A stretch of DNA of 64,000 bases from Paraphysomonas bandaiensis (Eukaryota > Protista > Chrysophyceae): assembly GCA_965644295.1 (NCBI GenBank), contig CBFFRP010000236.1, positions 124,001 through 188,000 of the forward strand, in the 5' to 3' direction. Below, in pieces: positions 53,943-56,900 of the stretch; within the stretch, counting starts at the first letter, position 1, and every line of letters begins with the position of its first letter. Position numbers and translations under genes: made by a program. The notes beneath the pieces were generated by a model. The model made no database searches, was not told the DNA's origin, and saw only the letters and a list, made by a program, of their open reading frames with translations.

Positions 53943-56900
53943 ATGAAATCAAATCAATTTGCTATACAATTAAGTCAGAATTCATATGAAAACTTTCAAT
54001 GTTTATTAATTGCAGAGTTATATGGGATTGAACTTATTTCAAGTTCAGAAACACTCTTTGCACCTTGTTATCCTGCATGTATACATGGTAACAAGTTAAT
54101 CTTTGGTTCTAGTCATATTAGTCGATATATTGCATCAATCTTTTCCAAATCACATAATATTACATGCCCTGTTGTTGATGATGCACTGGATATGGAGGAA
54201 TTCACTATACGTCCCTTAGTAACATCACTGAAAGCTCAGAGTGGTAAGTATTCACTGTATATATATACATATATAGTGTGCTGTGTATGTCATGTATATG
54301 GATGTGATGATTGCTCCATTTCACGACGGTCTTCGGATATGCATATGCCATACTGCAAAATGCGTAGGCGGACTGCTGCTGTCGATACTATAGCCTATCT
54401 GATCCATATCTTATTCAAACGTTGTATATGTTTTGCTCAACTTGTATTGTGTGATACAGCCTTTTTTTAATCCTCTATGCAGATCCAGCCTTGCCATCGG
54501 TCCGCGAAAGTGTTGCTGAGCTAACATCTGCTGTTGCTGATTTGGAAAAGGTTTGGGTCAAAATGCCATCGGGAGACGACATGGCGAAGACGTTCCTCTC
54601 CCTTGCACTCTACCCATCCATCAAATTAGCCATAGATCTTCTTCCTAATGGAAGTGGCGAGTGCCTTCGTCCATTGATTGCTGTAGCTGAGTCCAAAGTG
54701 TCTTTGGTTAAAGTGAACGCTAAACTCAAGGCACTTGAGGCTGCTGCTCCTGCATCCACTTCTGTGGCTCCGCCTCAAGTGGTGGTGGATGTACGTTCTG
54801 ATGGTGTTGTCAACTCCTTAAAAAATCTCTTTACCGCGGCTATCGCTACTGCACTCCCTATTCTTTTCCAACAGCCCCCTTCTGATGACTTGACTACAGC
54901 TGTTGAAGCTGTAATTACTCGATGCGGCAATCCTGCTCATGGAGATTTTCAATGCAACAATAGCATGAAGTGCACCAAGGCTCTTAAATCAGTTTCTGGT
55001 TATAGTGGTCCGAAAGCGCCGAAGGACATTGCTGCACTTATTGTGGCAGCCCTCCCAGAAAATTCTCTTATTGCCAAGACTAGCATTGCTGTGAGTAGTT
55101 TCCAGTTACTCTTTACTCATATCTTACTGTATACCTGCAGCCTAATGGATTCATAAACATTGAAGTAGCCACGGCTGTTTTGGTTGAGAGCATGGCGGAT
55201 GTTGTTGCCAGCGGCGTCAAACCACCTTCAGTGGATCGACTTAAGGTTTTAGTAGATTTCTCTTCTCCCAATATAGCTAAGGAGATGCATGTTGGACATC
55301 TCCGTTCTACAATTATTGGGGACTCTATATGTCGTATGCTGGAGTTCTGCGGCCATGATGTCATGAGGTACTTATATATTTCTCTTTTTATCGTTTATCT
55401 CACACTGATGTGTAGAATCAACCATGTGGGTGATTGGGGAACACAATTTGGCATGCTCATTACTTATCTACAAGAAGAGTATCCCGATATTGTTAGCAAT
55501 CCTCCTAACATATCTGACCTTACGGCCATATATAAGGCCGCCAAGAATCGATTCGATGCTGACGAGGATTTCAAAACGACATCCAGGAATAACGTAGTCA
55601 AACTACAGGTACATTTTCTTTCACTGTAGTGTATTTTCGGTGGGGTGATGGTAGTGGATATGATGTTTGAATCAGCTACTCTGAGAGTGGGCCTAGTCTC
55701 CCACATCTCATCATGTGGAAAACTTTTCTTGTGATCCTTTTATCATCACCTATAGCTTATATTCATTGAAGAAGTAATACTTGTTTTTCTTTACTGACAT
55801 TTGCTTCGTAGTCTGGCGATACGGCATGTAGGACGATATGGAATCTTTTATGTGACATATCCAGAAGAGAGTTTCAAAGAGTCTATGATGCTCTTGGTGT
55901 AACGCTGACTGAAGTAGGGGAATCATTTTACAACCCAAAGATCCCTCCAGCATTGGAAGAGCTTACCCAGGTATTCATCTCCGTATATTTGTGTGTGTTT
56001 ATGCTCTGGACAATGATGTATAATTCTTCCGGAACACTGATATCTCTGATGTCAACCAAATCAAAGACTTTAATTTTTCTGAGTCCTATATTTTCATTTT
56101 AATATCCGTTGACAATATAAATGCTTACCCTTAACCGTTTGTTGTCTAGCTTGGACTTACTGAGATGGAGGAGAAAATGCTTATTTCCAAGCTACCACAT
56201 TTCGACATTCCGCTTATTTTACGGAAGTCTGACGGTGGTTATGGCTACGATAGTACTGATATGGCCGCTATTAAGTATCGTCTTCATGATTTGGACCGAG
56301 ATTGGCTTGTGTATATTACGGATGCTGGTCAAGCTGGACACTTTCATAAGGTATTCGATGTTGCCCGTGCAGCGAAGTGGACACAGAAGGAACAGCGCTT
56401 GGATCATATCGGTTTCGGTGTAGTATGCTCGGAAGACGGAAAACGATTCAAATCTCGGTCTGGTGATACCGTCCGGCTCATTGACTTGCTGAACGAGGCC
56501 AGGGATAGAATGGCGTCGTCACTTGAAGAAAGAGTGAAGGAAGGCAAGACTGATCTTACGGTAAGAATACATGTGAGCATGTAATTTTGTTGTATATCTT
56601 TATATCCCAATGAGGATTAGTTATTAGCTCTAACTGACGGGCGAGAAGTAACTGACTCGCCCAAGGAAGATTTATATGCCTGAGGGATATATTGATGTCT
56701 GTGTTTTTGTGTTATGTGAGATGCAATGAGGACAAACAACCCAGCTCATATTGAGATTAAAATAGTCAATGACTTAAACTCTTTCCTATTTATCTGAGCA
56801 TCTCTGTATTTATGTCACTGTATTGTGCAATCTGCCATATACATGACGTATTATTCTAATAATGTTGTACGCAGCCTGAGCAGATTGTTGAAGCCTCCAC

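Follow-up and report, generated by a model that had tools for sequence, protein, structure and literature searches.

Five predicted box C/D snoRNAs in the introns of the arginyl-tRNA synthetase gene of Paraphysomonas bandaiensis

The host gene and its intronic units

The window analysed here is a stretch of 64,000 nucleotides from the chrysophyte Paraphysomonas bandaiensis (contig CBFFRP010000236.1, positions 124,001-188,000, forward strand), and it contains a spliced gene for arginyl-tRNA synthetase (ArgRS). Five blocks with the boxes, terminal stems and ribosomal RNA (rRNA) complementarity of box C/D small nucleolar RNAs (snoRNAs), here named sno1 to sno5, were found in four of its six introns (Table 1). 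Each of the five sits on the same strand as the coding sequence, within a GT-AG intron whose splicing is predicted from the sequence. Taken together with their conservation, described below, these features make it very probable that the ArgRS gene doubles as the host of five box C/D snoRNAs.

The gene model was obtained by picking GT-AG boundaries such that a single frame stays open and ends at a stop codon. Pfam searches were run on each exon separately, and the joined protein was translated only as a check of the reading frame. Over the exons, Arg_tRNA_synt_N, tRNA-synt_1d and DALR_1 were matched in this order, and the profile positions of tRNA-synt_1d run consecutively from exon to exon (14-61, 63-126, 127-178, 185-311 and 323-349). 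These exon-by-exon matches bear out the initial annotation, which had named ArgRS as the host. The intron sizes given there (about 180-310 nt for the long introns and about 50 nt for the short ones) fit the measured lengths of 239, 203, 179 and 314 nt and of 50 and 48 nt, and when boxes and stems were read in each intron, the four long introns proved to carry C/D units and the two short ones none, as had been claimed. No C/D pair with a stem was found in either short intron; intron 3 contains just one overlapping CUGAUGU, with no partner box.

The terminal stems of the five units measure 3-8 bp. Those of sno1 (7 bp, ATATGGA/TCCATAT), sno2 (an inner stem of 3 bp, GGA/TCC), sno4 (8 bp, TATATCCC/GGGATATA) and sno5 (7 bp, GAGATGC/GCATCTC) are present in the minimum-energy folds, and the z-score of the sno4 fold is -3.5; the stem of sno3 has 4 bp (GGAC/GTCC). 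Around the inner stem of sno2 there is also a longer outer stem (roughly 55643-55752), which is seen only in this genome and not in its relatives.

The units are not arranged strictly one to an intron: intron 6 houses both sno4 and sno5, and intron 1 of a related contig, L019, has two copies of sno1. In each long intron of the window, the 3'-most unit ends 63-74 nt ahead of the 3' splice site, a spacing close to the optimum for the splicing-dependent intronic C/D snoRNAs of vertebrates. Because the spacing is looser in the relatives (63-133 nt, with two cases of about 250-290 nt), we give it little weight.

Table 1. Positions of the ArgRS gene, its predicted snoRNA units and related loci (window coordinates unless a contig is named)
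Feature	Position	Strand	Details
ArgRS gene	53943-57402	+	7 exons, 6 introns, 808 codons; one open frame over GT-AG junctions, with Pfam matches
ArgRS exons	53943-54243, 54483-55090, 55141-55367, 55416-55608, 55812-55970, 56150-56560, 56875-57402	+	
Intron 1	54244-54482	+	239 nt; contains sno1
Intron 2	55091-55140	+	50 nt; no unit
Intron 3	55368-55415	+	48 nt; no unit
Intron 4	55609-55811	+	203 nt; contains sno2
Intron 5	55971-56149	+	179 nt; contains sno3
Intron 6	56561-56874	+	314 nt; contains sno4 and sno5, 26 nt between them
sno1, putative U35/snR73-like box C/D snoRNA	54296-54409	+	C GUGAUGA 54304-54310; D' CGGA 54334-54337; D CUGA 54399-54402
sno1 D' guide	54320-54333	+	14-bp duplex with own LSU
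sno2, putative box C/D snoRNA with non-canonical D	55656-55737	+	C AUGAUGU 55660-55666; D' CUGA 55681-55684; D GUGA 55731-55734
sno2 D' guide	55669-55680	+	12-bp duplex with own LSU
sno2 internal hairpin	55687-55691/55700-55704	+	
sno3, putative box C/D snoRNA	56008-56086	+	C AUGAUGU 56013-56019; D' CUGA 56037-56040; C' UGAUGU 56046-56052; D CUGA 56079-56082
sno3 D' guide	56024-56036	+	12-bp duplex with own SSU
sno3 accessory element	56061-56071	+	11 bp with SSU 1086-1096
sno4, putative U44/snoR18-like box C/D snoRNA	56601-56691	+	C AUGAGGA 56610-56616; D' CUGA 56634-56637; D CUGA 56680-56683
sno4 guide	56622-56632	+	11 Watson-Crick bp with own SSU
sno4 internal hairpin, 7 bp	56639-56645/56656-56662	+	
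sno5, putative U29/snR71-like box C/D snoRNA (clan CL00051)	56718-56804	+	C AUGAGGA 56726-56732; D' UUGA 56751-56754; D CUGA 56794-56797
sno5 guide	56738-56749	+	12-bp duplex with own LSU
Second snoRNA locus	C424:15896-16372 (L032 about 1127-1620)	minus	three consecutive introns: sno1 copy, C/D unit, sno5 copy
Third sno5 copy, 94%	C394:93515-93600 (L031 about 1502-1593)		C box GUGAGGA; in an intron of a protein-coding gene

Guides and their predicted rRNA targets

The rRNA used as target, namely the small-subunit rRNA (SSU), the 5.8S rRNA and most of the large-subunit rRNA (LSU), was taken from the same assembly, and the target nucleotide (bracketed below) was assigned by the +5 rule. The D' guides of all five units form duplexes of 11-14 bp with it. 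The guide of sno1 pairs over 14 bp with LSU AGA[C]CGUCGUGAGA and is directed to the C; that of sno5 pairs over 12 bp with LSU GUG[A]GCUGGGUU and is directed to the A, which lies 13 nt upstream of the sno1 site; and that of sno4 forms 11 Watson-Crick pairs with SSU UAG[A]GCUAAUA, the target being A161, which we take to be the site of human 18S Am166. The three targets named in the initial annotation thus hold at the +5 position on the organism's own rRNA. The "two further sites" that it left without names are LSU AGUA[G]CUGGUUC, where the guide of sno2 pairs over 12 bp and is directed to the G, and SSU GUU[C]CGGGGGGA (GGGUU[C]CGGGGGG), where that of sno3 pairs over 12 bp, including three G-U pairs, and is directed to C1100.

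A strict snoscan-like scan (C box with at most one mismatch, CUGA as box D, 4 bp or more in the stem, and 11 bp or more in an rRNA duplex with the target at +5) was applied to both strands of the whole 64-kb window. It returned exactly three matches, sno1, sno4 and sno5, all on the sense strand in ArgRS introns, as compared with a mean of 0.45 matches in 20 shuffled windows. A check of this type had been proposed with the initial annotation, and complementarity to the own rRNA was present for all five D' guides. The other two units fail the strict scan because of the GUGA box D of sno2 and the G-U-rich guide of sno3; they are supported by conservation in its place.

By target site, three of the five units (sno1, sno4 and sno5) belong to ancient families, and Table 1 of a study of Neurospora (PMC2780460) assigns the sites of sno1, sno5 and sno4 to snR73/U35, snR71/U29 and snoR18/U44, respectively. 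The target of sno1 is that of SNORD35 (U35), yeast snR73 and Neurospora CD31, and the U35-type genes of Neurospora and human are intronic, as is sno1. In Rfam, sno1 also gives a weak match to SNORD35 (RF00211), whose 20.2 bits stay below the gathering score of 36; sno1 further differs from this group in its D' box (CGGA), its length (about 114 nt) and its host, ArgRS. We have filed it as a putative functional homologue of SNORD35/snR73 by target site and not by covariance-model membership.

The site of sno5 is shared with SNORD29 (U29) and yeast snR71 (LSU GUG[A]GCUGGG), and the distance of 13 nt between the sno5 and sno1 sites equals that between A2946 and C2959 in yeast and between A2904 and C2917 in Neurospora (PMC2780460). 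The top Rfam matches of sno5 are snoZ162 (32.3 bits) and snoR69Y (31.9 bits; E about 1e-3), both short of their gathering scores of 45, and its orthologue in the related contig L020 matches snosnR71 at 29.9 bits, short of 60. The SNORD29 clan, CL00051, which includes snR71 and snoR69Y, was traced to the last eukaryotic common ancestor by Hoeppner and Poole (PMC3511168). From this clan sno5 differs in its score (about 32 bits against 45), in its C box AUGAGGA and D' box UUGA, and in being present as three copies in three host introns. A 10-bp match upstream of its box D to LSU GAG[A]UAGGAAA was also considered, but it is not kept in L019 and probably arose by chance.

The target of sno4 is that of SNORD44 (U44), Arabidopsis snoR18 and Neurospora CD32, and A161 corresponds to Am161 in Neurospora (PMC2780460). 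The layout differs: in sno4 it is the D' guide that is used, the second region being too short and variable for a guide, whereas Neurospora CD32 uses its D guide for this site and its D' guide for U167. No match of sno4 to the SNORD44 family model of Rfam was obtained even at E-values up to 10, the sole weak match being snoR77Y (19.1 bits). Because the stretch from C' to D is short and variable in both, sno2 and sno4 would be single-guide RNAs.

A second pairing region was recognized in sno3. Its conserved distal 11-mer, UCAAAGACUUU, forms 11 bp with the SSU stretch 1086-1096, which lies immediately upstream of the D' target; just 1.5% of random rRNA windows pair equally well. We considered this region as a box-D guide for methylation of SSU A1083, as the main role of sno3, and rejected it: relatives differ in the spacing and in the bases that adjoin box D, and position 5 is mispaired in them. 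Since these bases vary, the second region is probably not a methylation guide. Being set apart from box D in the relatives, it would fit the extra base-pairing layout of single-guide box C/D snoRNAs, in which an additional element pairs with rRNA near the D' target (van Nues et al. 2011, PMC3116282). When accessory pairing near the primary target was sought for sno1, sno2, sno4 and sno5, none was significant.

Should the intronic blocks not be snoRNAs at all but, for example, regulators of ArgRS splicing or, in the case of sno2, an RNA of the opposite strand, their likeness to C/D snoRNAs would be a coincidence. On the minus strand of the sno2 region there are indeed a CUGA and a perfect GUGAUGA, and two very weak matches to archaeal small RNAs were obtained there. 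However, this GUGAUGA lies in the outer stem that the relatives do not conserve, and the conserved 13-mer of sno2 would on that strand read as rRNA rather than as its complement, so the minus-strand reading was rejected. Moreover, coincidence would leave unexplained both the rRNA complementarity at the exact +5 register shared by all five units, of which three point to conserved methylation sites already known, and the presence of paralogues in introns of unrelated genes (see below). We consider this alternative very improbable.

Several observations nevertheless weigh against five functional snoRNAs. At gathering thresholds, Rfam gave no match in the window, and none of the units reaches its gathering score; the Rfam check proposed in the initial annotation was thus borne out in that the families SNORD35 (for sno1) and CL00051 (for sno5) were indicated, and the families that the introns match at permissive E-values are all of the C/D snoRNA type, but all of these matches are sub-threshold. 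The boxes deviate from the consensus in the C box AUGAGGA of sno4 and sno5, the D' boxes CGGA of sno1 and UUGA of sno5, and the box D GUGA of sno2. When each guide was shuffled singly and compared with the rRNA, significance was only moderate (p = 0.007 to 0.08), and the guide of sno3 requires its three G-U pairs. In sno1, sno4 and sno5, no convincing match in the own rRNA was found for the guide that precedes box D. About 370 nt of the LSU (roughly positions 466-840) were not found in the assembly, so targets in that stretch are invisible. Finally, the target sites of sno2 and sno3 have no counterpart among the fungal, yeast, plant and human entries in Table 1 of PMC2780460 and could be matched to no methylated position known in any organism; a text search with the sno2 target returned only papers that use the stretch as the D3B primer site.

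The ribosomal DNA (rDNA) itself is assembled as fragments at the ends of contigs C525, C545, C543, C516, C653 and C438. On C525 there is an odd junction, in which LSU positions of about 1139-1383 stand directly upstream of the SSU, and further, lower-scoring SSU-like matches lie on C188, C196, C68 and C669.

Conservation in related contigs and copies elsewhere in the genome

Relatives of the gene were found by a word search with ArgRS exon 6, which yielded environmental contigs of a close group, L019 to L024, and a distant one, L028. In six related contigs the protein of exon 6 is 83-86% identical, and further exon-sized open reading frames are 65-71% identical; the nearest named proteins in this search belonged to other stramenopiles, among them Triparma and Pinguiococcus. 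sno2, sno3 and sno5 occupy the same introns in every contig of the close group that covers the region, and sno1, too, is found in its intron wherever a related contig extends over it. Of the five relatives covering intron 6, three (L019, L021 and L024) retain sno4, where it is paired with sno5 in the same order, and is missing from L022 and L020, which carry sno5 alone in that intron. The D' guides and boxes are invariant across the relatives, apart from substitutions in sno2 and sno5 that keep pairing or register, and the flanks of the introns cannot be aligned. The terminal stems, for their part, vary in sequence between relatives and retain their complementarity. Such a pattern is the one expected of C/D snoRNAs, and this comparative evidence is the strongest support for the five predicted units.

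The stem of sno3 provides a clear case. It reads GGAC/GUCC, GGAU/AUCC, AGAC/GUCU or AAAC/GUUU in different contigs, so that 88.6% of the cells pair, as against 17-52% in slid controls, with both sides changed in six of seven pairs; its guide and its accessory element are both conserved in six relatives. The stems of sno5 likewise differ and still pair among relatives (GAGAUGC/GCAUCUC, CCCACGC/GCGUGGG and AUGC/GCAU), and a C-to-U substitution in its guide faces a G, which keeps the pairing. Some relatives have a canonical C box AUGAUGA and a CUGA D' in sno5, with the register unchanged; as the D' box, UUGA here, is CUGA at the identical position in L022 and L020, the register and thereby the target A of sno5 can be taken as fixed. 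In the orthologues of sno4, the guide, the spacing to D' (CUGA or CCGA) and the hairpin are kept and the terminal stems are different.

For sno1, a stretch of 33 nt over the C box and guide is identical in L019, in which two tandem copies, about 145 nt apart, lie at L019:2755-3025 in intron 1. Even in the distant L028, intron 1 contains a sno1 whose guide core is identical, whose D' box is CGUA and whose stem, GATTAG/CTAATC, is different yet complementary. The guide of sno2 is conserved in six relatives: one of its positions is U in the close clade and C in L028, so that a G-U pair is replaced by a G-C pair, and the L028 guide (GAACCAGCUACU) is fully Watson-Crick. In L028, the box D of sno2 is AUGA and the unit sits in another ArgRS intron, between exons 2 and 3. 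Over all seven copies of sno2 the box D is GUGA or AUGA (RUGA), and its internal hairpin covaries, with 96.7% of the cells pairing, as against 30-70% with slid partner columns, through exchanges of U-A, C-G and G-C/A-U pairs.

A search of the genome at the DNA level revealed further copies of two of the units. Contig C424 has paralogues of sno1 (87%) and sno5 (91%), about 300 nt apart, in the outer two of three consecutive introns of a host that reads as a spliced gene with short exons and is apparently non-coding. The unit between them is an unrelated C/D unit (AUGAUGA ... CUGA ... CUGA), for which no rRNA target was found. With the third copy of sno5 on C394 (Table 1), the sno5 guide family is present in three different host introns of the genome. 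The paralogues of sno1 and sno5 have boxes that are intact or carry one or two changes, and their stems show compensating changes. As for the other units, with up to one mismatch allowed, the guide plus D' patterns of sno2 and of sno4 have no other copy in the genome, and the guide pattern of sno3 has none except in one GC-rich repeat on C31 and C413, one base off the pattern, which lacks a C box and does not represent a snoRNA.

These copies bear on a further alternative, namely that only some of the five units work, those with deviant boxes (sno2, sno4 and sno5) being decaying copies that have ceased to form snoRNPs and whose job is done by paralogues. It is suggested by the box deviations, by the two additional copies of sno5 and by the absence of sno4 from L022 and L020. 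Decay would not, however, be expected to leave the same deviant boxes retained in relatives alongside guides that are intact and stems or hairpins that covary: GUGA or AUGA stands in all copies of sno2, and AUGAGGA recurs in the sno5 of L019 and L024. Nor was any back-up found for sno2 and sno4, whose patterns are unique in the genome, and the C boxes of the other sno5 copies (AUGCGGA on C424 and GUGAGGA on C394) are equally deviant or worse. This explanation therefore seems unlikely, and we infer the function of all five units from their orthologues in the related contigs and from the covarying stems.

Neither of the short, empty ArgRS introns of the window is present in L019 or L024, in which exons 2, 3 and 4 are contiguous, and all of the snoRNA-bearing introns are common to the window and these two contigs. 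Within the stretch that corresponds to exon 4 of the window, where the window has no intron, the relatives have an extra one (L024:994-1136, L019:4009-4201 and L022:195-441). In L019 and L024 it contains a C/D unit whose D' guide forms 12 Watson-Crick pairs with SSU CCAAUC[C]UGACAC, presumably the region methylated by U14; in L022 it contains a different C/D-like unit.

Expected processing and meaning of the locus

From these features, the following course of events would be expected. RNA polymerase II would transcribe the ArgRS pre-mRNA, and the six introns would be spliced out. In the four long ones, the core snoRNP proteins Snu13, Nop58, Nop56 and fibrillarin would bind to the kink-turn of the C and D boxes, which the terminal stem closes, and exonucleases would trim the debranched intron to this stem, leaving RNAs of about 80-115 nt. 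Because the two units of intron 6 lie only 26 nt apart, this intron would need one extra endonucleolytic cut or trimming from two sides, as in polycistronic intronic clusters. Each snoRNA would then pair with the pre-rRNA by the guide that precedes its D' box, and fibrillarin would 2'-O-methylate the nucleotide opposite guide position 5, that is, LSU AGA[C]CG (sno1), GUG[A]GC (sno5) and AGUA[G]CUGG (sno2), and SSU A161 (sno4) and C1100 (sno3). The second region of sno3 would serve for accessory pairing beside the D' target, with no role in methylation.

That snoRNAs reside in introns of translation-related genes is textbook knowledge, and the locus is a new instance of a well-known arrangement, not a new kind. 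Like the multi-snoRNA hosts among vertebrate ribosomal-protein and translation-factor genes, UHG/GAS5 and the plant intronic clusters, ArgRS carries sense-strand units in its introns, and it shares with such hosts the character of a housekeeping translation gene with mostly one unit per intron. It differs from them in being the aminoacyl-tRNA synthetase gene of a stramenopile flagellate and in having one intron with two units, which resembles the clusters of the plant type. In our literature search, no paper on the snoRNAs of Paraphysomonas, none describing ArgRS as a snoRNA host and no catalogue of stramenopile snoRNAs was found. The suggestion in the initial annotation that the finding may be undescribed is thus plausible for the host and the organism, but not for the arrangement, which was already known. 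Modestly unusual are the intron with two units, the conserved RUGA box D of sno2, the two targets that no entry of the table matches, and the retention of snoRNA introns as opposed to the absence of the two empty ones from L019 and L024.

A further reading, which we put forward tentatively and hold to be somewhat less probable than its negation, is that ArgRS in this flagellate lineage is a long-lived, evolving carrier of snoRNAs, in which sno2 and sno3 specify lineage-specific methylations guided only from ArgRS. In its favour are the snoRNA introns kept in L019 and L024, from which the empty introns are absent, the additional snoRNA intron in exon 4 of the relatives, and the presence of the sno2 guide in different ArgRS introns of distant relatives. 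If this is true, LSU AGUA[G]CUGG and SSU C1100 would be lineage-specific modifications of the ribosome.

The locus leaves the understanding of how snoRNAs work unchanged. It adds five well-supported predicted snoRNA genes, with their predicted targets, for a stramenopile group, and it shows that gene annotation here overlooks the non-coding cargo of introns. The orthologous introns from several relatives may also serve as a small, clean data set on which the relation between cargo and intron retention, and the movement of snoRNAs between introns and hosts, can be followed.

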